Below, one piece after another: positions 10,175-53,317 of a DNA stretch of 64,000 nt. Under the pieces are notes generated by a model. It had not been told where the DNA came from, did no database searches, and saw only the letters and a list, made by a program, of their open reading frames with translations. A program made the translations under genes and the position numbers. Every line of letters starts with the position of its first letter. Position 1 is the stretch's first letter. Origin of the DNA: Macrostomum hystrix (taxonomy: Eukaryota; Animalia; Platyhelminthes); NCBI GenBank assembly GCA_950097015.1, contig CATNEN010000001.1:4278001-4342000 (forward strand). Direction: 5' to 3'.

Positions 10175-13100
10175 TCACCTGCCGTCCTCTGCATTCAGCT
10201 TTCTACCTCTCCGCTGGCGCTCCATGCTGACGGACTCGCTCGCCGTCTCCATGGTGACGCATCGCTGATCATTCAGCGTCTCCGGCAGTGACTTCGCGAA
10301 CCGCTGCAGCTTCGCGTGGATCCAGCCGTCTCTCTGCTGCGCCACCGTTTCCATGGAGACGTTATTCCGCCAAATTCGTCGCAGCTTTTCCCTGACCCAG
10401 CGGATCTTCTCCTCATCCTGCGTCTCCATGGCGACGCGTCTCGCGTCCCTGACGGTCTCCATCTGTCGCAGGCTGAACTCCACGTGCTCAACTTGGTCGC
10501 TGTAGTGAGCCAGAGTGAGCAGCTCCTCCAAGTCCGGGTCCTCTTGCAGCTCTGAGAGCCACGCATCGAAGTCGATTGCTGTGCGATTGCGGAGCAGCTC
10601 AGCTTGGAGACTCCAGCTCAGGCAGCGGAAGTTCACGTACAGGTGCTCAGAGCGAGGCTGCGACAGTCTGGCTGTGAGCAGAGTCTGCGTGAACTCGGGA
10701 AGGAATGGGAATCGAGGCGGAGTGTCTGCGGGGAAGCAGAACCTCCACGCCCAGTCCGAATCTGATGGCAGATTGTATCTGATATCACTAGGCCTCATTC
10801 CACTCTGAACTCTGTGACTCTGGAGCTCCATCCCGAGTTTCTCAGCCTCCTTGGTGTCCCCGAACTTCAAATGCGCCATGGCAGTCATGCACAGGGCGGC
10901 GCACTTGCACCACCGCCGCTGATGCAGGAGACTGAGCTGCCCCATCTGGGTGTCTCTGTCTGCAGACTCTGACTGCAGCTCGCGAACACAATGGTGCACC
11001 ACACTGTACACTTCTGCTGACATCTCATAATCATGGATAATGGATTTCCTAATCTGAGTGACAGCAGGCGGCGCTGTCAGTGGCAGCAGAGTGAACAGGT
11101 GAAAGTAGAAATTCTCTGACTGCACAGGTCTCACGAGTCTCCTGATCTGCTCAACCACTCCGCCGATGTCGCTTCTCAGCTCTCTCAGTCGGTCTCGAAC
11201 CCTCACCTTCGTGTTGTCGAAGTCGCCGCCGATTCCAGCGTTCTTGAAGTAGAGCGGAGCGTCGGACATGAAGAAGTGCGGCATGCACTCATCGGATGAG
11301 CTGCTTGAGTCGATGAAGCTCAGCATCATGTCGAGAGACTCCTTCAGCAGTGAGATCAGATTCTGAGGCTGCCAAGCTTCAGCATTTGGGTCTGTGCCAT
11401 GCTTCTCCAGCATGAAGAAGAGCAGAGTCTTTGCATGGTAGGTCTTGAGTCCAGGTGTGTCCAGAGTGAGTGGCAAATGTCTCTTGAAGATGAACTTGAT
11501 GATTGAGAACAGCTGTCCCTGGACTGTGCTCAGCTGTCTCATGGCCTCTTTCTCTTGGAAGCTGAAGCTCACTCTGAGCTCATTGGTCTTATTCGGTCTG
11601 GTTGCCCTCACGAGGTGAGCCTTGTCGTTATTAATTCGCAGCTTCCTAACTCTGTGCTCACAGAATGAGCTGCAGCACTGGATCGCATGGCACGTGTCCT
11701 GAGCAGGCCGCACACCGCATGCCTTGGCTGAGACCGCAGGTTGGCTGCCTGCAGTGGGTGGTGAAACCCAGCATTTTTGTGACAAACGTCAAGTTCGGGA
11801 CTATTTTTAACCATAAAACTGTCCTGGATTGACACCAAACTACTCGTAAACCTCTAAACCCGTGAAGCACATGTCATGGCAGATGTCACTCACCTGACCC
11901 CACTGCCACCTGCGCGTGACCCTCCGTGACCCGCTGCTTCGTGGCAACTTCGCAGTCATTCCAATTATTCGTTTCATCGCAGCCGCCCTCCAGATGCAGC
12001 AGCTGCCCTTGAACCAGCACAGTCCAGTCAATGTCTGAGTCAGCCGCTGTCCTGCCGTTCACTTGCACCAGACTGTTGGCCCAGCCCTCTGCGTAGCTGC
12101 CTGACATATGCATCTCCCTGTTGTGAGTGAGGTCTTGAGCGACTCCTTCCAGCCAGTCAGCCATTTTCTGCTGACACTTTGCTCTCTCCTGAGTGAATCC
12201 CGCATCGCTGAGCAGTCGGTGCAGTTCCTCGCTGAGCTGCCTGTCCCGCTGTGAGTCGTCTCTGAGCCTGGAATGATGGGGAACTCAGTCAGCTGATGGA
12301 TTGTACACCTGCACAGACTGGCATCTCAAGCTGATCAGCAGAATCTGCAACTCACCCAGTGAGACTTGAGTCGGTGCAGAGTCCGGCTGTCTCCTTGGCA
12401 TTCGGTTCGCTGAAAAGTTCAGGAGGAAGTAGATCCGATTTACACCGATATCCTTTTGACCAGAGCATGAAAGTGTTCCCGGAATAATCATTAATACAAT
12501 AAAGCAACTGCTATAAATCACTTTGTATTTCAGCTGTTTCACATAGCTCACAATGGGGATTCAGTTAAAATGCTGACATAAGTAAAATCCACATCCTAAT
12601 TAAATCGCAGTTAAAACATTCTATGCATCGAGAGTTACATCCTTGGCCCTTGCATTTGTAGTCCTTGGGACAAAGTATGGAGGGGGAGGGAAAAAGCAGA
12701 AACGGGATGCAAATGCGTGGATAGGAAAATTTTGGTCCAATGAGTGAGTTCAGGCAATACTGCGGTCAAAGCCAGTTTGCAGCTCAGTTTTGATCTGAAA
12801 ATTCAAGTAGAAGCAAACTAACACGCAGGATCAGTTCCTGAAGATTGCATACTGAAGGAAATTAACACAGCATGACTGCCTCACCTCGATCGCGGGATCC
12901 CCAACAGTCGCAGCACCTGCTGATGTCCGCGCTGCTCCGCCAGCTGCGCACAAGTCCGACCCCGGCCGTCTCGATGACTCACATCCGCTCCTCTGTCCAT
13001 CAGAGTCTTGGCTGCTCGCACGTGACCCGCTTCACAAGCTCGCGACAGAGCTGTCCGACCCTGACTGTCTTCAGCTCGCACTGACGCACCGAGATCCACC

Positions 13101-14179
13101 AGCCTCTCAATGAGCTCGTGATGACCTGCATCAGCTGCCAGCATGAGAGCAGTGGCTCCTGAGCTGTCGTCTGGCTGATCGACGTGTTCTCTGCTGAGTC
13201 GCTCCTCATTGATGAGGGTGAGAGCCAGTGCGACATGGCCATGGGAGATTGAAGTACAGAGCAGCTGCGCGATCTGGGCTGGCTGCATTCGAGACAGAGT
13301 CTGGGTGAGAATCGAGTTCCTGCCCTCAATGGCCATCGAGGCGGTGAAGCTGAGCACTTGACTGAATTGGAAGAGCCACTCGGGCTGAAGATCGAGGATA
13401 GCAACGACATCTTCACGGAGACTAGAGCAGGCCGCGACTGCGCAGTCACGACAAACATTCTGTTTCAAAGTTTGGTCACCGACTGTCGGCAACAGAAACT
13501 TCACCACCTCCAACTGACCCTCGATTGCAGCAGATTTTGCAGCCCTGCTGCAGCACTGATCCCTCACTTTTTGGTCAGCGATTGTCGGCACCAGAAACTT
13601 CACCACCTCCAACTGACCATTGTTTGCAGCAGATTTCGCAGCCTCGCTGCAGCACTGATCTCTCACTTTTTGGTCAGCGATTGTCGGCACCAGAAACTTC
13701 ACCACCTCCAACTGACCATTGCTTGCAGCATATTGTGCAGCCTTGCTGCAGCACTGATCTCTCACTTCTTGGTCAGCGACTGTCGGCACCAGAAACTTCA
13801 CCACCTCCAACTGACCATTGCTTGCAGCATATTGTGCAGCCTTGCTGCAGCACTGATCTCTCACTTTTTGGTCAGCGATTGTCGGCACCAGAAACTTCAC
13901 CACCTCCAACTGACCATGGTATGCAGCAGATTTTGCAGCCTCACTGCAGCACTGATCTCTCACTTTTTGGTCAGCGACTGTCTGCACCAGAAACTTCACC
14001 ACCTCCCACTGATCGAATCTTGCAGCAGATTTCGCAGCCTCGCTGCAGCACTGATCTCTCACTTTTTGGTCAGCGACTGTCTGCACCAGAAACTTCACCA
14101 TCTCCAAGTCACCATTCGCTGCAGCATGTTCAATGCCATACTCATCAGGTGGAGCCGGGTCATTCGATTTGCTGGCCAT
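10175..14179 (-). CDS. Ankyrin-repeat / Mab-21 (cGAS-like receptor, cGLR) fusion, copy 1, ~1098 aa, 7 N-terminal 33-aa repeats
   Basis: Exons 14179-12885, 12409-12356, 12267-11894, 11748-10175, with GT-AG introns in phases 2,2,1; total 3297 nt, in frame. NTase motifs SGSYAEG..SDID, QDTCHAI, ELRVSFSFQEK, KTYHAKT, PHFF. Confidence 0.88.
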
Positions 14180-14259
14180 CTACTTCAGTCGCGGAATCAA
14201 GATGGTTGCTGTAATTCTGAAAGGCGCGAATTAGTTTTTTAAGCTTTCTCAAATTTTTC

Positions 14260-15905: not shown

Positions 15906-16139
15906 CCCGCTCCCTAATGAACCGGACTTGTCTCTAAGACCTGTCCATAGACAAATATCTGGCTTAACCCTCCTCTGTCAGAGCCTTTGTCAGACCCCAG
16001 TTAGAAATAGCCAGACACATTGCCCAGACACTTTGGCCTTCTAAACTGCATTTGGTCTCCTCCGTGGGTGCGCTCAATCTAAAATATTTTAGCGATAGTT
16101 TAAGTCTGCTGCTAGCCTTAGTAGCACCTTTCCAAGACT

Positions 16140-17264: not shown

Positions 17265-17652
17265 AGTTGGAGGGGCGGATAGTTGGAGGGGCGGATAGTT
17301 GGAGGGGCGGATAGTTGGAGGGGCGGATAGTTGGAGGGGCGGATAGTTGGAGGGGCGGATAGTTGGAGGGGCGGATAGTTGGAGGGGCGGATAGTTGGAG
17401 GGGCGGATAGTTGGAGGGGCGGATAGTTGGAGGGGCGGATAGTTGGAGGGGCGGATAGTTGGAGGGGCGGATAGTTGGAGGGGCGGATAGTTGGAGGGGC
17501 GGATAGTTGGAGGGGCGGATAGTTGAAGGGGCGGATAGTTGAAGGGGCGGATAGTTGAAGGGGCGGATAGTTGGAGGGGCGGATAGTTGGAGGGGCGGAT
17601 AGTTGAAGGGGCGGATAGTTGAAGGGGCGGATAGTTGAAGGGGCGGATAGTT
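17265..17652. repeat. 16-bp G-rich satellite (GGAGGGGCGGATAGTT)
   Basis: Tandem array with a GGGGCGG core. Confidence 0.96.
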
Positions 17653-18419: not shown

Positions 18420-18787
18420 TCCAGTTCATCCCCAAACCGAACAATCACATAAAATGAACATCCCCACCCTCCCAACCAATCCAGTTCATCCCCAAACCGA
18501 ACAATCACATAAAATGTACATCCCCACCCTCCCAACCAATCCAGTTCATCCCCAAACCGAACAATCACATAAAATGTACATCCCCACCCTCCCAACCAAT
18601 CCAGTTCATCCCCAAACCGACAAATAACCATAAAATGTACATCCGCACCCTCCCAAACGATCCAGTTCATCCCTAAACCGACCAATCACCATAAAATGTA
18701 CATCCGAACCCTCCCAACCAATCCAGTTCATCCCCAAACCGACCAATCACCATAAAATGAACATCCCCACCCCCCAACCAATCCAGT
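18420..18787. repeat. 60/61-bp minisatellite (inverted relative to 32140-33180 and 43483-44280)
   Basis: Unit CCAGTTCATCCCCAAACCGAACAATCACATAAAATGTACATCCCCACCCTCCCAACCAAT. Confidence 0.95.
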
Positions 18788-19371
18788 TGCTACTTTTTCT
18801 GCTTCTGCCGCTGCTTCTCCTGCTCACCAGCAGCGGTTGCCAGGCGGAAGATCTGGCCATAGTCGACAGGGCAGGTGCGTCTTATCAGTCGCAGGTGTTC
18901 AACGAATCCACTGGCGATGCCTACAATGCCGAGGGTCCCCTGCTGCCGTGTCGCCTGCTGCCTGCGGAGTCTGTGAAATGCAACCCGCCTCTTGATCTGC
19001 AGGGCAACTCCAGCCTGAAGGACATCCTTGGTCACGGCTGCACCAAATGGGGCGGCCAGACCTATCAGGAGGTTGAGCACACCAGGCTGCAATGCTTCGC
19101 TCTAGCTGACATTGAATGCTACGGCAGCTTTCTCAGAGGTCGATCGCCTTGTCTGAAGTACACGGGCCACTATTTCCTAACCACACTGCTTTACTCTGTG
19201 TTTCTGGGCTTCCTGGCAATCGACAGATTCTGCCTGGGCCACACAGGTGCCGCCATTGGCAAGATGCTCTGCTTAGGCGGCATTGGAATCTGGTGGATTA
19301 TCGTCGTCATCCTGCTGTGCACCGGCAGCTTGAGGCCTGCAGATGACAGCAGCTGGATGCCCTACTACTGA
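18757..19371 (+). pseudogene. TM2D2: TM2D2 copy 2 (native start lost; open frame starts in a satellite-derived ATG)
   Basis: Near-identical to 1004-1594, but the 5' end is fused to the 60-bp array, there is a 6-nt deletion (GSRSF>GSF), and the conserved WWIVD is changed to WWIIV. Confidence 0.7.
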
Positions 19372-19765
19372 TGTACTTTGCCCAGCCATTGTACAGCCAT
19401 TGTACAGCCATTGTACAGTTTCTTTATATCAGTGTACAGCCTAATGATTGTGCTTTAGATATATTACTGCGTACCTGGGCTTCTTCAATAAAGCAACGCA
19501 TTGCCTGAGCTCTGGTTTTATTTATTAAAGAATTGTGCTTTTTTGCTTGATCAATTTTCTAATATTCAATACAGGTAATGGGTACCAGCAAGCATATAGA
19601 GAGGTAGAAGCAAAGGGATCTTGCTCATGGACACAAATCCTTTGCCCTCGGCTGAGATTCGAACTTCAGACCTCTCAGATGGGAGAGACTGTGCCAAAGC
19701 CAAACAGTGAGCAGTGCCTCTCTCACAATGCATTTCAGCCTACTCAGCAGAACATTTCGAGCTCA

Positions 19766-20596
19766 ATGTCTCTCACCACTCAGTCGACTCATTCGCAATC
19801 AGCCCCAATGGCCGTTGACGATGCACCGGACCCGGATGTGAAGCCTCCAGAGCTGCAGCTGAAACTGGAGATGCAGGACGATGAGGGCCAGTCAGCTGAT
19901 GCACACGCCGATGACGTCACAGGCCAGTCAGCTGATGCGCACGCCGATGACGTCACTGGCCAGTCAGCTGATGCGCACGCCGATGACGTCACTGGCCAGT
20001 CAGCTGATGCGCATGCTGATGACGTCACTGGCCAGTCAGCTGATGCGCACGCCGTTGAAGCCGACGTTGACAAAAAGTGCTTCGAATGCGACTTCTGCGG
20101 CAAGCGTCTAGCACAACGCAGCTACCTGATGGCGCACCTGAGTATTCACACCGGTGAGAAGCCGTTCGAATGCCATCAGTGCGGCAAGCGTTTCTCCAGG
20201 CCCGGCTACCTGCGGCTGCACAGCAAGGCCGTCCACCAGAACGAGCGCCGGCACCTGTGCCGATTCTGTGGCAAAGCCTTCCCAGAGACCTCCAGTCTTG
20301 GTAGGCACATTCGCACTCACACTGGCGAGCGACCGTTTGTCTGCGAACTGTGCGGCGTCCGCTTCACCCAGGCTGGCAGTCTGGCTGATCACATGCGAGT
20401 CCACACCGGTGTTAAGCCTTTCACCTGTCTCACCTGTGGTGCCTCTTTTAGTAGAGCATTCTCACTGACCAACCATCTGAGAATGCACAATGGTGACAAG
20501 CCTTTTAAGTGTTTGGTGTGCGGCAAGACATTCTCACAGTCAGGTCACTTGTACCGACACCAGCGATCTACTCACTCTGCCGCTGTGCAGGTGTGA
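19766..20596 (+). CDS. C2H2 zinc-finger protein, 6 fingers (copy 2)
   Basis: Paralog of 1979-2782 with one extra 36-nt acidic repeat; the first ATG is lost and the second ATG at 19766 is retained. Confidence 0.85.
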   Translation: MSLTTQSTHSQSAPMAVDDAPDPDVKPPELQLKLEMQDDEGQSADAHADDVTGQSADAHADDVTGQSADAHADDVTGQSADAHADDVTGQSADAHAVEADVDKKCFECDFCGKRLAQRSYLMAHLSIHTGEKPFECHQCGKRFSRPGYLRLHSKAVHQNERRHLCRFCGKAFPETSSLGRHIRTHTGERPFVCELCGVRFTQAGSLADHMRVHTGVKPFTCLTCGASFSRAFSLTNHLRMHNGDKPFKCLVCGKTFSQSGHLYRHQRSTHSAAVQV

Positions 20597-20629
20597 GCAG
20601 TCTCTTCTCAAGACAGTGATTGCATCTGC

Positions 20630-24729: not shown

Positions 24730-27700
24730 TCAGCAGTTTTCACCTGCCGTCCTCTGCCTTCCGCTTCCTGCCTCTCCGCTGGCGCTCCAGGCTGACGGAC
24801 TCGCTCTCCGTCTCCATGGCGACGCGTCGCTGATCAGCGTCTCCGGCAGCGATTTCGCGAACCGCTGCAACTTCGCGTGCATCCAGCCGTCTCTCTGCTG
24901 CGCCACTGTTTCCATAGCAACCAGCCGACCGAGCTCATCATTGATCAGATGCAGCCGCGCTCTCACCCACAGCCTCCGCTCCTCATCCTCCAAACTCGAG
25001 TGGCTGTCGCTGCGAGTGGAAATTCGCCACAGCTTCTCCCTGACCCAGCGGATCTTCTCCTCATCCTGCGTCTCCATGGCGACGCGTCTCTCGTCCCTGA
25101 CGGTCTCCATCTGTCGCAGGCTGAACTCCACGTGCTCAACTTGGTCGCTGTAGTGAGCCAGAGTGAGCAGCTTCTCCAAGTCCGGGTCCTCTTGCAGCTC
25201 TGAGAGCCACGCATCGAGGTCGACTGCTGTGCGATTGCGGAGCAGCTCAGCTTGGAGACTCCAGCTCAGGCAGCGGAAGTTCACGTACAGGTGCTCAGAG
25301 CGAGGCTGCGACAGTCTGGCTGTGAGCAGAGTCTGCGTGAACTCGGGAAGGAATGGGAATCGAGGCGGAGTGTCTGCGGGGAGGCAGAACCTCCACGCCC
25401 AGTCCGAGTCTGATGGCAGATTGTATCCGATATCACCAGGCCTCATTCCACTCTGAACTCTGTGACTCTGGAGTTCCATCGCGAGTCTCTCAGCCTCCTC
25501 GAAGTCTCCGAACTTCAAATGCGCCATGGCGGTCATGCACAGGGCAGCGCACTTGCACCACCGCAGCTGATGCAGGAGACTGAGCTGCCTCATCAGGGTG
25601 TCTCTGTCTGCAGACTCTGACTGCAGCTCAAGAAAACAATGGTGCACCACACTGTACACGTCACTGTATAAGAATGTAGATAAATCTACATTCACACAAC
25701 CAACTGGCTTACGATGATTAGATCCTTTCCTTATTTTCGTGAAAGCAGGCGTTGTCAGTGGCAGCAGAGTGAACGGGTGAAAGTAGAAATTATTTGACTG
25801 TAAAGGTCTCACGAAACTGCTCATCTGCTCAACCACTCCGCCGATGTCGCTTCTCAGCTCTCTCAGTCGGTCTTGAACCCTCACCTTCGTGTTGTCGAAG
25901 TCGCCGCCGATTCCAGCGTTCTTGAAGTAGAGCGGAGCGTCGGACATGAAGAAGTGCGGCATGCACTCATCGGGTGAGCTGCTTGAGTCGATGAAGCTCA
26001 GCATCATGTCGAGAGACTCCTTCAGCAGTGAGATCAGATTCTGAGGCTGCCAAGCTTCAGCATTCGGGTCTGTGCCATGCTTCTCCAGCATGAAGAAGAG
26101 CAGAGTCTTTGCATGGTAGGTCTTGAGTCCAGGTGTGTCCAGAGTGAGTGGCAAATGTCTCTTGAAGATGAACTTGATGATTGAGAACAGCTGTCCCTGG
26201 ACTGTGCTCAGCTGTCTCATGGCCACTTTCTCGTGGAAGCTGAAGCTTACTCTGAGCTCATTGGTCTTATTTGGTCTGGTTGCCCTCACGAGGTGAACAT
26301 CTTTGAGATAAATGCTCAGCTTCCCAACTCTGTGCTCACAGAATGAGCTGCAGCACTCGATCGCATGGCACGTGTCCTGAGCAGGCCGCACACCGCATGC
26401 CTTGGCTGAGACGGCAGGTTGGCTGCCTGCAGTGGGTGGTGAAACCCAGTAGCAGTTTTTTGGCAAACGTCAAATTCGGGACTCAATTTATAACCATTAA
26501 CCATTAACCTGGATTGACACCAAACTACTCGTAAATTTCAAAATCTGTCTCACCAGTACTTCACCACAGCCTCCTCCTCCTACAGCCTCTACTGCTGGAC
26601 TCCATGTGAAACCCAATTTTGATTCTTTTGAAGCACATGTCATGGCAGATATCACTCACCTGACCCCACTGCCACCTGCGCGTGACCCTCCGTAACCCGC
26701 AGCTTCGTGGCACCTTCGCAAGCATGCCAATAAGTTTTCATTCCACCGCAGCCACCCTCCAGATGCAGCAGCTGCCCTTGAACCAGCACAGTCCAGTCAA
26801 TGTCTGAGTCAGCCGCTGTCCTGCCGTTCACTTGCACCAGACTGTTGGCCCAGCCCTCTGCGTAGCTGCCTGACATATGCATCTCCCTGTTGTGAGTGAG
26901 GTCTTGAGCGACTCCTTCCAGCCAGTCAGCCATTGTCTGCTGCCACTCTGCTCTCTCCTGAGTGAATCCCGCATCGCTGAGCAGTCGGTGCAGTTCCTCG
27001 CTGAGCTGCCTGTCCCGCTGTGAGTCGTCTCTGAGCCTGGAATGATGGGGAACTCAGTCAGCTGATGGATTGTACACCTGCACAGACTGGCATTTCAAGC
27101 TGATCAGCAGAATCAGCAACTCACCCAGTGAGACTTGAGTCGGTGCAGAGTCCGGCTGCCTCCTTGGCATTCGGTTCGCTGAAAAGTTCAGGAGGAAGTA
27201 GATCCGATTTACACCGATATTGTTTTGACCAGAGCATGAAAGCGTTCCCGGAATAATCATGAATACAAGAGAGCAACTGCTGTAAATCAGGTTGTATTTC
27301 AGCTGTTTCACATAGCTCACAATGGGCATTCAGTCAAAATGCTTGAGTAAGCAAAATAATCATCCTTAATAAAGTGTCCGATCGGCGCTCTCTGATTGGG
27401 TGTAAACACCCACCCCAGGCACCCACCCCAGGCACCCACCCCTCCGCCTTGAGCTGGGTTGTATTTCAGCTGTCGCCCGCGTACTGCCAAGCCCTACCTC
27501 ACCTCGATCGCGGGATCCCCAGCAGTCGCAGCAATTGCTGATCTCCGCGCTGCTCCGTCAGCTGCGCACAAGTCCGACCCCGGCCGTCTCGATGACTCGC
27601 ATCCGCTCCTCTGTCCATCAGAGTCTTGGCTGCTCGCACGTGACCCGCTTCACAAGCTCGCGACAGAGCTGTCCGACCCTGACTGTCTTCAGCTCGCGCT

Positions 27701-36897: not shown

Positions 36898-39800
36898 TCA
36901 GCAGTTTTCACCTGCCGTCCTCTGCCTTCCGCTTCCTGCCTCTCCGCTGGCGCTCCAGGCTGACGGACTCGCTCTCCGTCTCCATGGCGACGCGTCGCTG
37001 ATCAGCGTCTCCGGCAGCGATTTCGCGAACCGCTGCAACTTCGCGTGCATCCAGCCGTCTCTCTGCTGCGCCACTGTTTCCATAGCAACCAGCCGACCGA
37101 GCTCATCATTGATCAGATGCAGCCGCGCTCTCACCCACAGCCTCCGCTCCTCATCCTCCAAACTCGAGTGGCTGTCGCTGCGAGTGGAAATTCGCCACAG
37201 CTTCTCCCTGACCCAGCGGATCTTCTCCTCATCCTGCGTCTCCATGGCGACGCGTCTCTCGTCCCTGACGGTCTCCATCTGTCGCAGGCTGAACTCCACG
37301 TGCTCAACTTGGTCGCTGTAGTGAGCCAGAGTGAGCAGCTTCTCCAAGTCCGGGTCCTCTTGCAGCTCTGAGAGCCACGCATCGAGGTCGACTGCTGTGC
37401 GATTGCGGAGCAGCTCAGCTTGGAGACTCCAGCTCAGGCAGCGGAAGTTCACGTACAGGTGCTCAGAGCGAGGCTGCGACAGTCTGGCTGTGAGCAGAGT
37501 CTGCGTGAACTCGGGAAGGAATGGGAATCGAGGCGGAGTGTCTGCGGGGAGGCAGAACCTCCACGCCCAGTCCGAGTCTGATGGCAGATTGTATCCGATA
37601 TCACCAGGCCTCATTCCACTCTGAACTCTGTGACTCTGGAGTTCCATCGCGAGTCTCTCAGCCTCCTCGAAGTCTCCGAACTTCAAATGCGCCATGGCGG
37701 TCATGCACAGGGCAGCGCACTTGCACCACCGCAGCTGATGCAGGAGACTGAGCTGCCTCATCAGGGTGTCTCTGTCTGCAGACTCTGACTGCAGCTCAAG
37801 AAAACAATGGTGCACCACACTGTACACGTCACTGTATAAGAATGTAGATAAATCTACATTCACACAACCAACTGGCTTACGATGATTAGATCCTTTCCTT
37901 ATTTTCGTGAAAGCAGGCGTTGTCAGTGGCAGCAGAGTGAACGGGTGAAAGTAGAAATTATTTGACTGTAAAGGTCTCACGAAACTGCTCATCTGCTCAA
38001 CCACTCCGCCGATGTCGCTTCTCAGCTCTCTCAGTCGGTCTTGAACCCTCACCTTCGTGTTGTCGAAGTCGCCGCCGATTCCAGCGTTCTTGAAGTAGAG
38101 CGGAGCGTCGGACATGAAGAAGTGCGGCATGCACTCATCGGGTGAGCTGCTTGAGTCGATGAAGCTCAGCATCATGTCGAGAGACTCCTTCAGCAGTGAG
38201 ATCAGATTCTGAGGCTGCCAAGCTTCAGCATTCGGGTCTGTGCCATGCTTCTCCAGCATGAAGAAGAGCAGAGTCTTTGCATGGTAGGTCTTGAGTCCAG
38301 GTGTGTCCAGAGTGAGTGGCAAATGTCTCTTGAAGATGAACTTGATGATTGAGAACAGCTGTCCCTGGACTGTGCTCAGCTGTCTCATGGCCACTTTCTC
38401 GTGGAAGCTGAAGCTTACTCTGAGCTCATTGGTCTTATTTGGTCTGGTTGCCCTCACGAGGTGAACATCTTTGAGATAAATGCTCAGCTTCCCAACTCTG
38501 TGCTCACAGAATGAGCTGCAGCACTCGATCGCATGGCACGTGTCCTGAGCAGGCCGCACACCGCATGCCTTGGCTGAGACGGCAGGTTGGCTGCCTGCAG
38601 TGGGTGGTGAAACCCAGTAGCAGTTTTTTTGGCAAACGTCAAATTCGGGACTCAATTTATAACCATTAACCATTAACCTGGATTGACACCAAACTACTCG
38701 TAAATTTCAAAATCTGTCTCACCAGTACTTCACCACAGCCTCCTCCTCCTACAGCCTCTACTGCTGGACTCCATGTGAAACCCAATTTTGATTCTTTTGA
38801 AGCACATGTCATGGCAGATATCACTCACCTGACCCCACTGCCACCTGCGCGTGACCCTCCGTAACCCGCAGCTTCGTGGCACCTTCGCAAGCATGCCAAT
38901 AAGTTTTCATTCCACCGCAGCCACCCTCCAGATGCAGCAGCTGCCCTTGAACCAGCACAGTCCAGTCAATGTCTGAGTCAGCCGCTGTCCTGCCGTTCAC
39001 TTGCACCAGACTGTTGGCCCAGCCCTCTGCGTAGCTGCCTGACATATGCATCTCCCTGTTGTGAGTGAGGTCTTGAGCGACTCCTTCCAGCCAGTCAGCC
39101 ATTGTCTGCTGCCACTCTGCTCTCTCCTGAGTGAATCCCGCATCGCTGAGCAGTCGGTGCAGTTCCTCGCTGAGCTGCCTGTCCCGCTGTGAGTCGTCTC
39201 TGAGCCTGGAATGATGGGGAACTCAGTCAGCTGATGGATTGTACACCTGCACAGACTGGCATTTCAAGCTGATCAGCAGAATCAGCAACTCACCCAGTGA
39301 GACTTGAGTCGGTGCAGAGTCCGGCTGCCTCCTTGGCATTCGGTTCGCTGAAAAGTTCAGGAGGAAGTAGATCCGATTTACACCGATATTGTTTTGACCA
39401 GAGCATGAAAGCGTTCCCGGAATAATCATGAATACAAGAGAGCAACTGCTGTAAATCAGGTTGTATTTCAGCTGTTTCACATAGCTCACAATGGGCATTC
39501 AGTCAAAATGCTTGAGTAAGCAAAATAATCATCCTTAATAAAGTGTCCGATCGGCGCTCTCTGATTGGGTGTAAACACCCACCCCAGGCACCCACCCCAG
39601 GCACCCACCCCTCCGCCTTGAGCTGGGTTGTATTTCAGCTGTCGCCCGCGTACTGCCAAGCCCTACCTCACCTCGATCGCGGGATCCCCAGCAGTCGCAG
39701 CAATTGCTGATCTCCGCGCTGCTCCGTCAGCTGCGCACAAGTCCGACCCCGGCCGTCTCGATGACTCGCATCCGCTCCTCTGTCCATCAGAGTCTTGGCT

Positions 39801-40666
39801 GCTCGCACGTGACCCGCTTCACAAGCTCGCGACAGAGCTGTCCGACCCTGACTGTCTTCAGCTCGCGCTGACGCACCGAGATCCACCAGCCTCTCAATGA
39901 GCTCGTGATGACCTGCATCAGCTGCCAGCATGAGAGCAGTGGCTCCTGAGCTGTCGTCTGGCTGATCGACGTGTTCTCTGCTCAGTCGCTCCTCATTGAT
40001 GAGGGTGAGAGCCAGTGCGACATGGCCATGGGAGATTGAAGTACAGAGCAACTGCGTTATCTGGGCTGGCTGCATTCGAGACAGAGTCTGGGTGAGAACC
40101 GAGTTCCTGCCCTCAATGGCCATCGAGGCGGTAAAGCTAAGCACTTGACTGAATTGGAGCCACTCGGGCTGAAGACCAAGGAAGGCAACGACATCTTCAT
40201 GGAGACTAGAGCAGGCCGTGACAGCGCATTCACGATGAACATTCTGTTTCAAGGTTTGGTCAGCGATTTTCTGCACCAGAAACTTCACGACCTCCAACTG
40301 ACCCGATCTTGCAGCAGATTTCGCAGCCTTGCTGCAGAACTGATCTCTCACTTTTTGGTCAGCGACTGTCTGCACCAGAAACTTCACCACCTCCAACTGA
40401 CCCTCGATTGCAGCAGATTCCGCAGCCTTTCTGCAGCACTGATCTCTCACTTTTTGGTCAGCGATTGTCGGCACCAGAAACTTCACCACCTCCAACTGAC
40501 CCGATCTTGCAGCAGATATCGCAGCCTCGCTGCAATATTGATCGCTCGCTTTTTGGTCAGCGACTGTCTGCACCAGAAACTTCACCATCTCCAAGTCACC
40601 ATTCGCTGCAGCATGTTCAATGCCATAGTCATCAGGTGGAGCCGGGTCATTGGATTTGCTGGCCAT
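36898..40666 (-). CDS. Ankyrin/cGLR fusion, copy 3, ~1040 aa, 4 N-terminal repeats
   Basis: Exons 40666-39672, 39347-39294, 39205-38829, 38594-36898; total 3123 nt, in frame; all NTase motifs intact. Confidence 0.87.
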
Positions 40667-41564
40667 CTACTTAAGTCTCGGAATCAAGATAGTTGCTATT
40701 CTGAAAAGCGTGAATTTTTTAATTTGTTTAATCTTTCTCATATTTTTCATTAATTACACGCGCCATAATCAGGCCAGATGTGCAGCTGACAACCCAGCGC
40801 ATCGCAGCAACTGAAGGCAGCGTACGGCTGTTCAGTCCATGGACTGGCAACGCCACACCCCAGCCCCTAATTACCCAAGCTAATGCTGTTACCCATTTAA
40901 CAACTGTGTGTGCTGAAGAGTTAGGTGCTAAAGGTAAAAATGTTTCAGTGGGTCGTGAATCGAACTTTCGACCGTGGGCGGCATTTGGTCAAGCAGGGTA
41001 CAGATTGTCTATGGGAATGAGGAAAGGCTAGTATTACTTCATAGAACAGGGAATAGTTGCTATGGAAATAGAGTTGCAAGTCAGTTTATTGACTAATTTC
41101 TAATTTAAAGGTTCATTTGAGACGCGACAGCTTCAATGCATGCACTAGTTTAGACATTCTTCCCATTCAAACCGTGATTTTTTAGAACTCATCCGGACCG
41201 ATCGGAGCAATGGTCTCTTCATGTCCTAATTCTTTACTGTAATTCGAGCTGTCTCGATTTATTTGGAAATTTCTTCGAAACGACCTGTCCATAGACAAAT
41301 GTCTGGCTTAACCCTCAGAGCCTTAGTCAGACCCCAGTTAGAAATAGCCAGACACATTGCCCAGACACTTTGGCCTTCTAAACTGCATTTGGTCTCTTCC
41401 TGGGTGCGCTCAATCTAAAATACTTGAGCGATTGTTTAAGTCTCCTGGTAGCCTTAGAAGCACCTTATAGATGAAGCACCTTATAGAAAATAGATGAAGA
41501 CAGAAAAATGGTTTTCTTTTTTGAACTTGGACACAGATTTCTCGGATGGGGCGGATAATTAGAT

Positions 41565-42551
41565 GGCGGATAGTTGAAGGGGCGGAGAGTTGGAAGGGGC
41601 GGAGAGTTGGAGGGGCGGAGAGTTGGAGGGGCGGAGAGTTGGAGGGGCGGATAGTTGGAGGGGCGGAGAGTTGGAAGGGGCGGAGAGTTGGAGGGGCGGA
41701 TAGTTGAAGGGGCGGATAGTTGGAGGGGCGGAGAGTTGGAGGGGCGGAGAGTTGGAAGGGGCGGAGAGTTGGAGGGGCGGATAGTTGAAGGGGCGGATAG
41801 TTGGAGGGGCGGAGAGTTGGAGGGGCGGAGAGTTGGAGGGGCGGATAGTTGGAGGGGCGGAGAGTTGGAAGGGATAGTTGGAGGGGCGGAGAGTTGGAAG
41901 GGATTGTTGGAGGGGCGGAGAGTTGGAAGGGATTGTTGGAGGGGCGGAGAGTTGGAAGGGATAGTTGGTGGGGCGGAGAGTTGGAAGGGATTGTTGGTGG
42001 GGCGGAGAGTTGGAAGGGATTGTTGGTGGGGCGGAGAGTTGGAAGGGATTGTTGGTGGGGCGGAGAGTTGGAAGGGATTGTTGGTGGGGCGGAGAGTTGG
42101 AAAGGATTGTTGGAGGGGCGGAGAGTTGGAAGGGATTGTTGGTGGGGCGGAGAGTTGGAAGGGATTGTTGGTGGGGCGGAGAGTTGGAAAGGATTGTTGG
42201 AGGGGCGGAGAGTTGGAAGGGATTGTTGGTGGGGCGGAGAGTTGGAAGGGATTGTTGGTGGGGCGGAGAGTTGGAAAGGATTGTTGGAGGGGCGGAGAGT
42301 TGGAAGGGATTGTTGGTGGGGCGGAGAGTTGGAAGGGCGGATAGTTGGAGGGGCGGATAGTTGGAGGGGCGGATAGTTGGAGGGGCGGATAGTTGGAGGG
42401 GCGGAGAGTTGGAAAGGATTGTTGGTGGGGCGGAGAGTTGGAAGGGCGGATAGTTGGAGGGGCGGATAGTTGGAGGGGCGGATAGTTGGAGGGGCGGATA
42501 GTTGAAGGGGCGGATAGTTGAAGGGGCGGATAGTTGAAGGGGCGGATAGTT
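41565..42551. repeat. G-rich 16/29-bp satellite (shorter paralog of 29668-31207)
   Basis: Tandem array. Confidence 0.95.
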
Positions 42552-43482
42552 CAGCTCTCAATTCACCACACTCTATGAGCATGCATATACTGGCACAGTT
42601 AAACATTCACTAAATCAGTGCTGATTGACTCACCAGCTGCTCACGGGCAGTTCGACCTACTTGGCTGCTGAAGTTCGATGGAATTTCTTGCAGTCTTTGC
42701 TCGAGCCGTCAGTTTGATGCTAGGAACAAGAGTTAGGTTGTGGGTCTGCGCACTGGGGCTGCGCACGAACGCAGCCTCTTTAAAACCATTTAAAGGCAGT
42801 GCAACGATTCGGATCAGATAAGATTTCATCAGTTTTACTTAGCTTTAGCTTCATCAGTTTTAAGCAGCCAGTTGTCTCTTCTTTCTGGCCTCTCTATTTG
42901 TCCACTCCTAGCATTCAAGTTCTAATCTTGGCTTCGTTGTCGATTAGAATCCCGCGGAGTTGGTTTGTTGATTTTGTTGCTAGGCAGTTTGGCTGCTGGC
43001 TCGCACCGGCGGGACACGAAGCCTGTGAGGTATGACCAGCCCGCGAGCTACGGTGTGCGCAGTTTATGGCGAGTAGTACGACTTTATGCCACCCTGCCGC
43101 ACTATAGCCGAGATAGGCGGAAAATGGCAGGACGTGGGGAGAGAGTTTGGGGGTTGGTAATCTGGGGTTGGGGTGGGGGTTAGCAATCTGGGGTTGGGGT
43201 GGGTGGTTAGCAATCTGGGGTTGGGGTGGGGGTTAGCAATCTGGGGTTGGGGTCAGGTCAAAAGAAAGCTTTTTGTGATGATTTTTGTCTGCTAGAACCC
43301 TAGATTTCACAGCAGTGTACACAGAGTTTTGGAGAGAGACAGAAAAAAGGAGGCCCAGCACAGCTGCGCTTACGCTATTTATTTTTTATAAATGCAAACT
43401 TTTTATATCTTGTCCAAATCTCAAGGCTTACTGAGTGCGTTTGCACTAGTTAAAGGCGAATATTAACACGGCTTGCTTATCG

Positions 43483-44729: not shown

Positions 44730-45434
44730 ATGGCTGTGTGCGTTAAAGTGCGAATCCAAGAATATGAAGCTCATCGTTTCATTGCAACCCGGCGATTCTT
44801 TCCCTCTGAAGGAGGCATGAGGGCTGGCATTCCTGGCTTCAACCTCAACGCGCACCAATGGGAGAAGCTTAAGCAACTGAAACGTCAGCTGGCGCTTTCG
44901 GCTCTCAACCGCCGCAACGTGAGCGTCAAACTGGGCTTTGACAAGCTGGCAATTGTCAACAGGGGCATGATCTGGCTAAAGTGGCTACCTGAAGATTGCA
45001 CTGAAGACTACCTGAAGCGCAACTCAGTGGCGCTGACTCCTCGCCTGTGGGGAGCGCTCAGGAGAAAGGCTCCGCTGATCGAAGAAGAGCTGCGCGGCAA
45101 AGCACCTGAGAGCGAGTACGAGGTGGACGCTGAGGATGTCAAGTCCGAAGGCTCCGAATTACGCCAGGAAACATTGTCTGGTGAGGAGGTCGACGATGAC
45201 AAGACACTGCTCATCAGCCAGTCGGACAACGCAACAGATGGTCTGCCAGTGACTCCATCCAGCCTCATCTCGCAGCAGGGCAGCAACTTGACGCAGGATC
45301 CGCTGTGGTACCAGTTTCGCGCTTCTTCAGGGCTAAGCAACGCGCCGAACAAACGGAAGCTTCCATGGCCTCTGCGCAGGCAAGATGCGGTCAAGTTGCC
45401 GAGGATCGACTATGTCGAGAACGACAATGAATGA
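44730..45434 (+). CDS. PC4-like protein (copy 2)
   Basis: 234 aa, differing from 33628-34332 at three residues in the C-terminal tail; offset 11,102 bp. Confidence 0.65.
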   Translation: MAVCVKVRIQEYEAHRFIATRRFFPSEGGMRAGIPGFNLNAHQWEKLKQLKRQLALSALNRRNVSVKLGFDKLAIVNRGMIWLKWLPEDCTEDYLKRNSVALTPRLWGALRRKAPLIEEELRGKAPESEYEVDAEDVKSEGSELRQETLSGEEVDDDKTLLISQSDNATDGLPVTPSSLISQQGSNLTQDPLWYQFRASSGLSNAPNKRKLPWPLRRQDAVKLPRIDYVENDNE

Positions 45435-48017: not shown

Positions 48018-51000
48018 TCAGCAGTTTTCACCTGCCGTCCTCTGCCTTCCGCTTCCTGCCTCTCCGCTGGCGCTCCAGGCTGACGGACTCGCTCTCCGTC
48101 TCGATCGCGACGCATCGCTGATCAGCGTCTCCGGCAGCGACTTTGCAAACCGCTGCAGCTTTGCGTGGATCCAGCCGTCTCTCTGCTGCGCCACTGTTTC
48201 CATAGCAACCAGCCGACCGAGCTCATCATTGATCAGATGCAGCCGCGCTCTCACCCACAGCCTCCGCTCCTCATCCTCCAAACTCGAGTGGCTGTCGCTG
48301 CGAGTGGAAATTCGCCACAGCTTTTCCCTGACCCAGCGGATCTTCTCCTCATCCTGCGTCTCCATGGCGACGCGTCTCTCGTCCCTGACGGTCTCCATCT
48401 GTCGCAGGCTGAACTCCACGTGCTCAACTCGGTCGCTGTAGTGAGCCAGAGTGAGCAGCTCCTCCAAGTCCGGGTCCTCTTGCAGCTCTGAGAGCCACGC
48501 ATCGAAGTCGATTGCTGTGCGATTGCGGAGCAGCTCAGCTTGGAGACTCCATATCAGGCAGCGGAAGTTCACGTACAGGTGCTCAGAGCGAGGCTGCGAC
48601 AGTCTGGCTGTGAGCAGAGTCTGCGTGAACTCGGGAAGGAATGGGAATCGAGGCGGAGTGTCTGCGGGGAGGCAGAACCTCCACGCCCAGTCCGAGTCTG
48701 GTGGTAATTTAACAGAATTGCGTTGCAGACGAGAAACTTTACTGGGCTTGAGTCCACAAACTACTTGATGATTCCGGAGCTCCATCGCGAGTCTCTCAGC
48801 CTCCTTGGTGTCCCCGAACTTCAAATGCGCCATGGCGGTCATGCACAGGGCAGCGCACTTGCACCACCGCAGCTGATGCAGGAGACTGAGCTGCCTCATC
48901 AGGGCGTCTCTGTCTGCAGACTCTGACTGCAGCTCGCGAACACAATGGTGCACCACACTGTACACGTCTGCTGACATCTTATAACTAAATTTCCTAATCT
49001 GAGTGACAGCAGGCGGCGCTGTCAGTGGCAGCAGTGTGAACAGGTGAAAGTAGAAATTCTCTGACTGCAGAGGTCTCACGAGTCCCGTCATCTGCTCAAC
49101 CACTCCGCCGATGTCGCTTCTCAGCTCTCTCAGTCGGTCTCGAACCGTCGCCTTCGTGTTGTCGAAATCGCCGCCGATTCCAGCGTTCTTGAAGTAGAGC
49201 GGAGCGTCGGACATGAAGAAGTGCGGCATGCACTCATCGGGTGAGCTGCTTGAGTCGATGAAGCTCAGCATCGTGTCGAGAGACTCCTTCAGCAGTGAGA
49301 TCAGATTCTGAGGCTGCCAAGCTTCAGCATTCGGGTCTGTGCCATGCTTCTCCAGCATGAAGAAGAGCAGAGTCTTTGCATGGTAGGTCTTGAGTCCAGG
49401 TGTGTCCAGAGTGAGTGGCAAATGTCTCTTGAAGATGAACTTGATGATTGAGAACAGCTGTCCCTGGACTGTGCTCAGATTTCTCATGGCCTTTTTCTCT
49501 TGGAAGCTGAAGCTCACTCTGAGCTCATTGGTCTCATTCGGTCTGGTTGCCCTCACGAGGTGAACATTTACTTTATAAATGCTCAGCTTCCTAACTCTGT
49601 GCTCACTGAATGAGCTGCAGCACATGATCGCATGGCACGTGTCCTGAGCAGGCCGCACACCGCATGCCTTGGCTGAGACCGCAGGTTGGCTGCCTGCAGT
49701 GGGTGGTGAAACCCAGCATTTTTGTGACAAACGTCAAGTTCGGGACTCTATTTTTAACCATAAAACTTTCCTGGATTGACACCAAACTACTCGTAAACCT
49801 CTAAACCCGTGAAGCACATGTCATGGCAGATGTCACTCACCTGACCCCACTGCCACCTGCGCGTGACCCTCCGTGACCCGCTGCTTCGTGGCAACTTCGC
49901 AGTCATTCCAATTATTCGTTTCATCGCAGCTGCCTTCCAGATGCAGCAGCTGCCCTTGAACCAGCACAGTCCAGTCAATGTCTGAGTCAGCCGCTGTCCT
50001 GCCGTTCACTTGCACCAGACTGTTGGCCCAGCCCTCTGCGTAGCTGCCTGTCATCTGCATCTCCCAGTTCTGAGTGAGGACTTGAGCGACTATTTCCAGC
50101 CAGTCAGCCATTGTCTGCTGACACATTGCTCTCTCCTCAGTGAATCCCGCATCGCTGAGCAGTCGGTGCAGTTCCTCGCTGAGCTGCCTGTCCCGCTGTG
50201 AGTCGTCTCTGAGCCTGGAATGATGGGGAACTCAGTCAGCTGATGGATTGTACACCTGCACAGACTGGCATCTCAAGCTGATCAGCAGAATCAGCAACTC
50301 ACCCAGTGAGACTTGAGTCGGTGCAGAGTCCGGCTGGCCTCCTCGCTGAAATCCGGTTTGCTGAAAAGTTCAGGAGGAAGTAGATCCGATTTACACCGGT
50401 ATCCTTTTGACCAGACCAAGTGTTCAGTGCATAATCATTAATACAATTACTAAATCGCAGTTAAAACATTCTATGCATCGAGAGTTACATCCTTGGCCCT
50501 TGCATTTGTAGTCCTTGGGACAAAGCAGGGAGGGTGGAGAAAAGGCAGAAACGGGATGCAAATACGTGGATAAGGAAAATTTGGTCCAATGAGTCTGTTC
50601 AAGCAATACTGCATTCAAAGCCAGTTTGGAGCTCAGTTTGATCTGAAAATTCAAGTAGAAGCAAACTAACACGCAGGATCAGTTCCTGAAGATTGCAAAC
50701 TGAAGGAAATTAACACAGCATGACTGCCTCACCTCGATCGCGGGATCCCCAACAGTCGCAGCACCTGCTGATGTCCGCGCTGCTCCGCCAGCTGCGCACA
50801 AGTCCGACCCCGGCCGTCTCGATGACTCACATCCGCTCCTCTGTCCATCAGAGTCTTGGCTGCTCGCACGTGACCCGCTTCACAAGCTCGCGACAGAGCT
50901 GTCCGACCCTGACTGTCTTCAGCTCGCACTGACGCACCGAGATCCACCAGCCTCTCAATGAGCTCGTGATGACCTGCATCAGCTGCCAGCATGAGAGCAG

Positions 51001-53317
51001 TGGCTCCTGAGCTGTCGTCTGGCTGATCGACGTGTTCTCTGCTGAGTCGCTCCTCATTGATGAGGGTGAGAGCCAGTGCGACATGGCCATGGGAGATTGA
51101 AGCACTGAGCAGCTGCGCGATCTGGGCTGGCTGCATTCGAGACAGAGTCTGGGTGAGAATCGAGTTCCTGCCCTCAATGGCCATCGAGGCGGTGAAGCTG
51201 AGCACTGGACTGAATTGGAAGAGCCAGTCGGGCTGAAGATCGAGGATAGCAACGACATCTTCAAGGAGACGAGAGCAGGCCGCGACTGCGCAGTCACGAC
51301 AAACATTCTGTTTCAAGGCTTGGTCAGCGACTGTCGGCACCAGAAACTTCACCACCTCCCAGTGACCAATGATTGCAGCAGATTTCACAGCCTTGCTGCA
51401 GCACTGATCTCTCACTTTTTGGTCGGTGACTGTCGGCACCAGAAACTTCACCACCTCCCACTGACCCTCGATTGCAGCAGATTTCGTAGCCTCGCTGCAG
51501 CACTGATCTCTCACTGTTTGGTCAGCGATTTTCGGCACCAGAAACTTCACCACCTCCAACTGACCCCTGTATGCAGCAGACTTCGCAGCCTCGCTGCAGC
51601 ACTGATCTCTCACTTTTTGGTCAGCGACTGTCGGCACCAGAAACTTCACCACCTCCCAATGACCCTCGATTGCAGCAAATATCGTAGCCTCGCTGCAGCA
51701 CTCATCTCTCACATTTTGGGCAGCGACTATCGGCACCAGAAACTTCACCACCTCCAACTGACCATTCATTGCAGCAGATATCGCAGCCTCGCTGCAGCAC
51801 TGATCTCTCACATTTTGGTCAGCGACTGTCGGCACCAGAAACTTCACCACCTCCCAGTGACCATTTTTAGCAGCAGATTCCGTAGCCTCGCTGCTGCACT
51901 GATCTCTCACTTTTTGGTCAGCGACTGTCGGCACCAGAAACTTCACCACCTCCATCTGACCCTTGATTGCAGCAGATTTTGCAGCCTCGCTGCAGCACTG
52001 ATCTCTCACTTTTTCGTCAGCGACTGTCGGCACCAGAAACTTCACCACCTCCAACTGACCCTTGAATGCAGCAAATTTCGCAGCCTCGCTGCAGCAATCA
52101 TCTCTCACATTTTGGTCAGCGACTGTCGGCACCAGAAACTTCACCACCTCCCACTGACCCTCGATTGCAGCAGATATCGCAGCCTCGCTGCAGCACTGAT
52201 CTCTCACTTTTTGGTCAGTGACTGTCGGCACCAGAAACTTCACCACCTCCAACTGACCATTCATTGCAGCAGATTTCGCAGCCTCGCTGAAGCACTGATC
52301 TCTCACTTTTTGGTCAGTGACTGTCGGCACCAGAAACTTCACCACCTCCAACTGACCATTCATTGCAGCAGATATCGCAGCCTCGCTGCAGCACTGATCT
52401 CTCACATTTTGGTCAGCGACTGTCGGCACCAGAAACTTCACCACCTCCCAGTGACCATTTTTAGCAGCAGATTCCGTAGCCTCGCTGCTGCACTGATCTC
52501 TCACTTTTTGGTCAGCGACTGTCGGCACCAGAAACTTCACCACCTCCATCTGACCCTTGATTGCAGCAGATTTTGCAGCCTCGCTGCAGCACTGATCTCT
52601 CACTTTTTCGTCAGCGACTGTCGGCACCAGAAACTTCACCACCTCCAACTGACCCTTGAATGCAGCAAATTTCGCAGCCTCGCTGCAGCAATCATCTCTC
52701 ACATTTTGGTCAGCGACTGTCGGCACCAGAAACTTCACCACCTCCCACTGACCCTCGATTGCAGCAGATTTCGCAGCCTCGCTGCAGCACTGAACTCTCA
52801 CTTTTTGGTCAGCGATTGTCGGCACCAGAAACTTCACCACCTCCAACTGACCCCATCTTGCAGCAGATTCCGCAGCCTCGCTGCAGCACTGAACTCTCAC
52901 TTTTTGGTCAGCGATTGTCGGCACCAGAAACTTCACCACCTCCAACTGACCCCATCTTGCAGCAGATTTCGCAGCCTCGCTGCAGCACTGAACTCTCACT
53001 TTTTGGTCAGCGATTGTCGGCACCAGAAACTTCACCACCTCCAACTGACCCTTGAATGCAGCAAATTTCGCAGCCTCGCTGCAGCACTGAACTCTCACTT
53101 TTTGGTCAGCGATTGTCGGCACCAGAAACTTCACCACCTCCCACTGACCCTTGATTGCTGCAGATTTCGCAGCCTCGCTGCAGCACTGATCTCTCACTTT
53201 TTGGTCAGTGACTGTCTGCACCAGAAACTTCACCACCTCCCACTGACCCAATGACGCAGCGAGCTTTATAATACAGACGCGCCATTGAAGTGATGGATCT
53301 TCGCGCTGTGAGTCCAT
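48018..53317 (-). CDS. Ankyrin/cGLR fusion, copy 4, 20 N-terminal repeats (~1544 aa if micro-exon 2 is skipped)
   Basis: Exons 53317-50733, (50360-50303, 58 nt, frame-disrupting), 50214-49841, 49693-48018. Exon 1 to exon 3 splicing is in frame. TGSYAEG..SDID, QDTCHAI, ELRVSFSFQEK and KTYHAKT are intact. Confidence 0.78.

Follow-up and report, generated by a model that had tools for sequence, protein, structure and literature searches.

We analysed a 64,000-nucleotide (nt) window of the Macrostomum hystrix genome (contig C1, positions 4278001-4342000, in an assembly of 220 Mb and 42 contigs) and found that it carries four tandem, four-exon, minus-strand paralogues of the Macrostomum ANK-cGLR family, in which an ankyrin (ANK) array is joined to a nucleotidyltransferase (NTase) domain resembling that of the cGAS-like receptors (cGLRs), and which are transcribed and spliced. 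A 2023 catalogue already contains both the family and its architecture, so that the window adds members and detail to it; the main value of the window lies in the arrays, where the distribution of substitutions is consistent with a diversifying binding surface. Taken as a whole, the genes are best explained, in our moderately confident judgement, as encoding ligand-gated nucleotidyltransferases that would sense through the array.

Self-BLAST placed the four paralogues at 10175-14179, 24730-28692, 36898-40666 and 48018-53317 of the window, all on the minus strand, in agreement with the four tandem copies reported in a preliminary description of the same DNA. The cluster arose by recent segmental duplication: copies 2 and 3 lie inside a 12.17-kb tandem duplication and are 99.2% identical over 4.9 kb, and the surroundings of the four copies are segmentally duplicated and rich in minisatellites. 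The exons, all on the minus strand, are as follows.

Copy 1 exon 1, 12885-14179, minus strand: ATG at 14179; six variable 33-residue ANK units and a cap, then a helical spacer followed by three canonical ANK repeats; ends AG/GTGAGG.
Copy 1 99-nt tandem array, 13471-14126, minus strand: 6.6 copies with 91% matches (program TRF).
Copy 1 exon 2, 12356-12409, minus strand: 54-nt linker micro-exon; both junctions present in contigs.
Copy 1 exon 3, 11894-12267, minus strand: 374 nt; NTase core with spine helix, GS loop (SGSYAEGW) and SDID; junctions present in contigs.
Copy 1 exon 4, 10175-11748, minus strand: third acid of the triad (QDTCHAI), Mab-21_C lobe, a helical C-terminal domain specific to the family, and a tail; stop at 10175-10177.
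Copy 2 exon 1, damaged, 27503-28692, minus strand: ATG lost, TAG at 28555-28557; only the last 350 codons open.
Copy 2 exon 2, 27125-27178, minus strand: 54 nt; intact splice sites.
Copy 2 exon 3, 26660-27036, minus strand: 377 nt; open in frame.
Copy 2 exon 4, 24730-26426, minus strand: 564 codons, open.
Copy 3 exon 1, 39672-40666, minus strand: ATG at 40666; three variable units and a cap.
Copy 3 exon 2, 39294-39347, minus strand.
Copy 3 exon 3, 38829-39205, minus strand.
Copy 3 exon 4, 36898-38594, minus strand: 564 codons.
Copy 4 exon 1, 50733-53317, minus strand: ATG at 53317; 19 variable units and a cap; an internal duplicated block makes units 11-14 identical to units 5-8.
Copy 4 exon 2 homologue, 50303-50360, minus strand: 58 nt against 54.
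Copy 4 exon 3, 49841-50214, minus strand.
Copy 4 exon 4, 48018-49693, minus strand: 557 codons.

Two of the four copies are intact, copy 1 with an exon sum of 3294 nt (1098 codons) and copy 3 with 3120 nt (1040 codons); these sums and the intron phases agree with the phase-compatible exons and the frames of 1098 and 1040 residues that had been proposed for them. They provide two full-length sequences with different arrays that are usable for expression. In copy 2, the start codon is replaced (agtagATGgcc to agtaattctgagcc) and the first unit contains a GAG>TAG change at 28555-28557. In copy 4, use of the 58-nt exon 2 or of its internal acceptor places exon 3 out of frame, and the frame is kept only by skipping exon 2. 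Because an ankyrin exon joined straight to exon 3 was seen in no contig of the four public runs compared with 10100-13450, such a rescue of copy 4 is unsupported. The frames of exon 3 and exon 4 are open in all four copies, and the last exons comprise 523-564 codons.

Each ankyrin frame appears to end in PRSR and a stop, which the preliminary description took to overlap a splice donor. The motif GATCGAG/GTGAG, encoding PRSR and then TGA within the donor, has exactly four occurrences (12880, 27498, 39667 and 50728), one per copy, and the stop of the ankyrin frame is in each copy the in-frame TGA of a phase-2 donor, as that description held. In copy 1, the frame ends with CGA TCG AG/GTGAGG at 12885 and the TGA (12881-12883) is intronic; the other borders read ttttcag/.../gtgagt for exon 2, ccag/.../gtgagt for exon 3 and ctgcag/ at 11748 for exon 4. 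The intron phases of copy 1, read from the sequence, are 2, 2 and 1, and the frame is therefore continuous over the four exons. A phase-2 stop made by the donor (AG/GTGAGT or AA/GTAAGT) is found in 10 further genomic paralogues, and it is therefore a family-wide effect of intron phase and no special device.

Transcription was checked by comparing four public runs with window positions 10100-13450 (3351 letters). In runs X19 and X20, 37-40% of the contigs are at least 99% identical to the window, and both runs are therefore of the same species. Their contigs contain all three copy 1 joints, 12409/12885 (475 nt skipped), 12267/12356 (88 nt) and 11748/11894 (145 nt); read on the gene strand, all have GT..AG ends, and they lie exactly at the positions put forward in the preliminary description. 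The depth over copy 1 was 0 in the last intron, 1.5-8.6 in the first intron and 25-300 in the exons; the run type is not stated in the record, and the depth and joint pattern of X19 and X20 are those of RNA. These short contigs document each junction separately, and no single molecule runs across all four exons; independently of them, ANK and Mab-21_C are placed together in one protein by M. lignano gene models. Four other contig joints (10706>11160, 11455>13124, 10645>10736 and 10140>10219) were considered as isoforms and rejected; they have no splice-site ends and were attributed to paralogy or assembly. Close to the 3' end of copy 1, the contigs of X19, X20 and X1 differ from the assembly by a 78-nt skip (10140-10219) without splice-site ends and by the replacement of 15 nt by 102 letters (10356-10372), which are probably paralogue or allele differences in a variable C-terminal tail.

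The ankyrin exons of all copies contain arrays with a 99-nt period (TRF), and the Pfam model Ank_2 matched the ANK frames with E values from 1.7e-49 in copy 1 to 1.1e-93 in copy 4, in up to 11 stretches over the array. The variable units, which are in register, are followed by a cap and lack the TPLH signature, number six in copy 1, at least four in copy 2, three in copy 3 and 19 in copy 4; over the window and the other paralogues, the number per gene ranges from 3 to 36. The identity from unit to unit is 91% in DNA and 79-82% in protein. In a model of the M. lignano homologue P0005, the canonical C-terminal ANK repeats superpose on designed ankyrin proteins with a root-mean-square deviation (rmsd) of 0.8-0.9 Å.

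The variation among the 32 units of the window has its entropy maximum at ankyrin positions 13 and 14, with 2.6-2.7 bits and 8-9 residue types, and the next most variable positions are 9, 6, 17, 31 and 10. As a guard against circularity, the ankyrin exons of 14 other paralogues (137 units) were scored at sites predefined from the window. In this independent set, positions 13 and 14 (1.95 and 2.29 bits) and 9 were again the most variable, and the predefined sites had a pN/pS of 1.42 versus 0.51 at the remaining sites, the entropies and pN/pS counts being descriptive and taking no account of the relatedness of units. Positions 13 and 14 should correspond to those that are randomised (AAxxGH) when ankyrin binders are designed, and by this designed ankyrin repeat protein (DARPin) numbering the variable positions are predicted to lie on the concave face. 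Each array holds 2-5 types of di-residue at positions 13/14 (IN, IK, RN, IE, RK, SE and others), and this small number per array may simply result from block duplication.

The arrays change in length by in-register unequal recombination. The array of copy 3 is shorter than that of copy 2 by exactly two units (198 nt), though the flanks are 99.2% identical, and this difference is direct evidence of recent in-register recombination; the two copies, two repeat units apart, constitute a natural experiment.

A comparable organisation is found in the ANK, TPR and WD arrays of fungal NOD-like receptors (NLRs), whose units are highly conserved within an array and polymorphic in number, with positive selection acting on the concave face, whereas highly conserved repeats are rare in animals, at 0.8% of repeats (Dyrka et al. 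2014, PMC4986451). The likeness includes near-identical tandem units, differences in repeat number (here among genes), few variable positions and concerted evolution, together with a focus on the concave face, which for our arrays is predicted from the DARPin numbering. In contrast to the fungal receptors, the genes of the window have their array at the N terminus and encode a cGAS-like nucleotidyltransferase in place of a NACHT/NB-ARC ATPase, the host is an animal, and the protein identity of the units (79-82%) is slightly under the 85% criterion applied to the fungal arrays.

The enzyme domain was searched exon by exon, and its fold was taken from the M. lignano homologue P0005, which is 58% identical. 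All motifs of the cGAS/Mab-21 set named in the preliminary description are present (SGSYAEG...SDID, QDTCHAI, ELRVSFSFQEK, KTYHAKT and PHFF), and the GS loop and the three acidic residues are conserved in the family. In the four copies, the catalytic motif reads SGSYAEGW...SDIDW, and QDT follows 58 residues later. Among 43 aligned family members, every one has GS, the two DxD aspartates persist in 42 and 41, and a third aspartate, on a predicted strand, is present in 37 (an acidic residue in 38). This pattern of GS and acidic triad fits the motif of Li et al. for active cGLRs, defined as a GS loop plus [DE]h[DE]h-X50-90-h[DE]h (Li et al. 2023, bioRxiv 10.1101/2023.02.22.529553, PMC9980059). The Pfam model Mab-21_C (PF20266) matched all four last exons with 28.5-30.3 bits against a cut-off of 24.1. 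No segment is found between RVSFSFQEKE and the next helix, QGQLF, at what is presumably the position of the cGAS zinc thumb, consistent with the earlier claim that the thumb is absent. A pattern of His and Cys residues is kept in exon 3 and the start of exon 4 throughout the family (e.g., 11950-12010 and 11640-11700, minus strand), with HLxGxCxC...GH followed by CC and PCH; C199, C244 and H264 of P0005 are kept in at least 90% of members. The conservation suggests a putative metal site, placed differently from the cGAS zinc thumb.

The AlphaFold2 model of P0005 (predicted local distance difference test (pLDDT) 84.6, predicted template-modelling score 0.78) shows the bilobal NTase/Mab-21 fold in residues 104-425, which match Cv-cGLR1 (8gjw) with Z 20.1 and rmsd 3.6 over 268 aligned residues. 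Mouse cGAS follows with Z 18.2, MB21D2 with 17.9, Sp-cGLR1 with 17.4, MAB21L1 with 16.0, MiD49 with 15.2 and bacterial CD-NTases with 13-15; the top Foldseek matches of the model were cGAS, at E 1.2e-06. The comparison with cGAS that had been suggested earlier is thus positive for the fold of the homologue. Residues 86-104, between ankyrin repeats and enzyme, have a pLDDT below 50, and the linker is disordered in the model. With cGAS, Cv-cGLR1 (8GJW), Sp-cGLR1 (8GJY) and Tc-cGLR (7LT2), the family shares the fold (Z 16.5-20.1 for the homologue model), the GS loop, the triad with its 58-residue spacing, RVSFS.xEK and YHxKT. The differences are an identity of 11-18%, the absence of the zinc thumb, a longer loop from GS to DxD, a near-neutral to acidic enzyme domain, and the addition of the N-terminal array and of a C-terminal helical domain of ~300 residues. 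MAB21L1, MiD49 and MB21D2, which have no known product, adopt the same fold (Z 15.2-17.9). The window family differs from them in that its GS and acidic catalytic residues are conserved; Mab21L1/2/3 have no predicted functional active site (PMC9980059).

The last ~300 residues of the protein (window 10178-11104, minus strand) were modelled separately from exon 4 of the window with a pLDDT of 85.4. The domain is helical and TPR-like; it also has two long terminal helices and a small sheet of three strands. Solved structures gave generic TPR-like or helical matches, the best of them, at Z 9.2, short of the caution limit set for helical folds. No Foldseek match reached E <=0.001, Pfam gave no match on this domain or on exon 3, and the ESM Atlas gave weak leads only, with scores <=0.87.

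In the mechanism that we favour, the concave face of the array, with its hypervariable positions 13, 14, 9 and 6, would bind a ligand that is not a nucleic acid and is probably a pathogen or mobile-element protein. Ligand binding would activate the flexibly tethered enzyme, either by relief of inhibition or by clustering, and the activated enzyme would make a nucleotide second messenger to be read by a STING-like or other receptor. A non-nucleic-acid ligand is proposed because the net charge of the enzyme domain in the window copies is -2 to -8, whereas nucleic-acid-sensing cGLRs have a pI >8.5 (PMC9980059). If the arrays are sensors, a diversifying repeat receptor would be paired with direct synthesis of a second messenger, and there would be a reason why the array-less constructs of 2023 were not among the actives. 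To our knowledge, this pairing of an ANK array and a second-messenger enzyme is known in outline from domain catalogues and has never been characterised.

Several observations weigh against this mechanism. The Mab-21 core model PF03281 matched neither exon 3 (E up to 1) nor eight full-length M. lignano members, so that, of the Pfam assignments looked for, Mab-21_C and Ank_2 were confirmed and the core was not; the sequence model does not reach so divergent a core, and the fold evidence stands. The GS-to-DxD spacing is ~10 residues longer than in cGAS, and the third acid of this subfamily sits in AQDTC, with Q instead of a hydrophobic residue before D. A profile of the array-less family members reached cGAS/cGLR structures in the PDB only at E 0.1-0.4, which is suggestive but not significant, and a profile from the full family alignment was discarded, being swamped by ankyrin. 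The fold is moreover predicted on the homologue P0005 and not on the joined protein of the window, and two of the four copies are damaged. Among the local copies, dN/dS is 0.9-1.8 in the exon-4 part of the enzyme, 1.2-3.2 in exon 3, and lower in the canonical ankyrin repeats (0.5-0.65) and the C-terminal domain (0.7), values that are noisy because the local divergence is only ~4%; a ratio of ~0.9-1.8 in the enzyme would fit relaxed constraint as well as selection for diversification of the whole protein. No family member is known to be active. In Table S3 of the 2023 screen, five M. lignano constructs (#89-93) were listed with their arrays removed, and none of the five has an entry in the Note column, where the 15 actives are labelled (PMC9980059); constructs #92 and #93 belong to this subfamily and start where exon 3 starts. 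The same authors report that many cGLRs are inactive, probably for want of the right ligand (PMC9980059).

The receptor side weighs in the same direction. A six-frame search of the genome with STING_LBD returned one frame, C2:9104529-9104996 (minus strand), covering model positions 3-145 of 182 with 25.6 bits, below the 27-bit cut-off. The STING-like frame (C2:9104028-9105038, minus strand) begins ...AFAWNFAFTFLRLILPKLDECI and carries AFAWNFAFTFLRLILPKL and an LRLILP helix motif. Against the PDB, 14 of its 14 matches were STING (E 0.06-1.2), aligned to the first helix of the solved domains; a PDB search with a shorter cut of the frame was blank, and a word-based homologue search with it found nothing. 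The search for STING proposed earlier thus yielded a single sub-threshold frame, which, judged by its sequence, is probably a divergent, unproven STING. An upstream exon ending in gtgagt lies at about 2255-2460 of L001, in which the frame occupies 1000-2010.

Among the alternatives, an active cGLR that recognises its ligand with the NTase domain's back face, as in cGAS and Drosophila cGLR1, with the array serving localisation, autoinhibition or partner recruitment, seems to us unlikely. Exon 3, which encodes the spine helix and insertion loop, is itself substitution-rich (dN/dS 1.2-3.2), and family members without an array exist (P0025, P0035 and P0062), as such a model would have it; the enzyme domain is not basic, however, and the model leaves unexplained both the variation of the array at few positions on a conserved framework and the large differences in repeat number. 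Less probable again is that the Mab-21 domain acts as a scaffold without catalysis, the role suggested for MAB21L1 or MiD49/51, and that the proteins are fast-evolving ankyrin adaptors with a role perhaps outside immunity, for example in allorecognition or reproduction. MiD49 (Z 15.2) and MAB21L1 (Z 16.0) also match the model well, no family member has been reported active, the genome search gave no clear STING, and the enzyme-domain dN/dS is near 1. Yet 37-43 of 43 diverse members retain GS and the three acids, a conservation difficult to account for in a non-catalytic protein, and the best structural matches are active cGLRs.

It is very unlikely, in our estimate, that the local cluster is decaying into pseudogenes and that the array variation is neutral slippage. 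Such a decay would be in keeping with the missing ATG and the TAG of copy 2, the frameshifting exon 2 of copy 4 and a dN/dS of about 1, but copies 1 and 3 are uninterrupted over 1098 and 1040 codons, the last exons are open in all four copies, the locus is transcribed and spliced, the array framework has a pN/pS of 0.51 in independent paralogues, and most of the at least 80 genomic loci are free of stops. A wider extension of the ligand-gated mechanism, in which the ANK-cGLR family is the main intracellular recognition repertoire of the flatworm and the shuffling, by recombination, of units with a small set of di-residues creates many specificities, each wired to a cyclic-nucleotide synthase, strikes us as a rather improbable one; if true, it would make the family an animal counterpart of the fungal hypervariable NLRs or of the lamprey variable lymphocyte receptors. 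As far as we know, the flatworm phylum is said to have lost Toll-like receptors and most cGLRs. A unit-by-unit code for a linear polymer, as in TALE and PUF repeats, is a sub-case of this extension and much less likely.

The family was known in part before this analysis. Li et al. name the ankyrin-repeat fusion as a cGLR domain architecture, list Ank_2 on four M. lignano proteins in Table S2 (PAA68676.1, PAA86972.1, PAA45980.1 and PAA58690.1) and find cGLRs to be absent from most flatworms (PMC9980059). The earlier caution that ankyrin/Mab-21 fusions might already be predicted was justified, more so than expected, since M. lignano members had been listed and cloned. The ANK-cGLRs PAA93208.1 and PAA68676.1 share architecture and subfamily with the genes of the window, and their screen constructs open with the sequence also found in the window genes, RxxDSQRxRQLSEELH...GSYAEGWANSL...SDID...GSQPAV...QDTC. 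They come from another genome, and the paper has no account of hypervariable units, the range of repeat numbers, clusters or the extra C-terminal domain. A literature search on Macrostomum and cGAS, or on cGLR and flatworm, gave nothing specific, and no identical protein was found in the databases; all strong database relatives are M. lignano proteins, with 72-79% identity to exon 4 of the window.

In the M. hystrix genome, exon 4 gave 96 matches at no fewer than 80 loci, a lower bound, with 209 candidates at first look; most family loci have no stops, and ~25 loci have at least 80% identity and lie mostly on contig C1. The clusters on C1 are at 3.35, 4.29-4.33 (the window), 9.6, 11.4, 12.72-12.82 and 13.85 Mb. 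The four-gene cluster is an ordinary piece of a very large family, and the suggestion that an organised variable cluster stands out here did not hold, the cluster being one of several and only half of its copies intact.

Two candidates for intronless fusions were rejected. At C2:3.32 Mb, a frame of 1192 codons consists of exon 4 and a low-complexity decapeptide tail; at C2:3317332-3320877 (minus strand), the last exon of a paralogue is continued by ~60 tandem decapeptides (PSKLRASSVNH-like) in one open frame of 1181 codons. At C1:0.37 Mb, in another cluster, a frame of 795 codons is an exon 4 that runs into the ankyrin exon of the next gene; at C1:367767-369989 (plus strand), an exon-4-like frame passes without a stop into the next gene's array (740 codons). 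Several M. lignano models contain multiple units (P0004, of 2381 residues, and P0014 and P0052, each with two GS motifs), and a run-on from exon 4 into the next array could explain them; they would then be either products of read-through or gene models that were chained together. Two further M. lignano models, P0007 and P0119 (PAA59752.1 and PAA80948.1), show an N-terminal Mab-21 domain, ankyrin repeats and a C-terminal caspase (Peptidase_C14, E 2.7e-25). If real, they would wire a cGLR-like enzyme directly to a death protease; they may instead be chained neighbouring genes.

A G-rich minisatellite with a 16-nt unit (AGTTGGAGGGGCGGAT) or a 29-nt variant occurs at 17265-17652, 29701-31057, 41548-42551 and 53557-54322, 0.2-3 kb upstream of the ATG in every copy, and is the source of the strong GC skew of the region. 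It may promote unequal exchanges or be a promoter-proximal element. The long open reading frames at 29664-31262 and 41410-42606 are translations of this minisatellite and have no Pfam match. Between copies 1 and 2 are a TM2-domain frame (18757-19371, plus strand; Pfam E 3.7e-11) and a C2H2 zinc-finger frame (19535-20596, plus strand; zf-H2C2_2, E 1.5e-39), both within a second segmental duplication that is 94-97% identical to 1016-4287. A frame of 234 codons is duplicated between gene copies, at 33628-34332 and 44730-45434 (both plus strand), with a weak PC4-like match (E 0.0023) below the cut-off. Just outside the cluster lie satellites at 55229-56528, 57744-60248 and 60746-61376, with periods of 21, 41 and 50 nt and 62, 62 and 13 copies, respectively.

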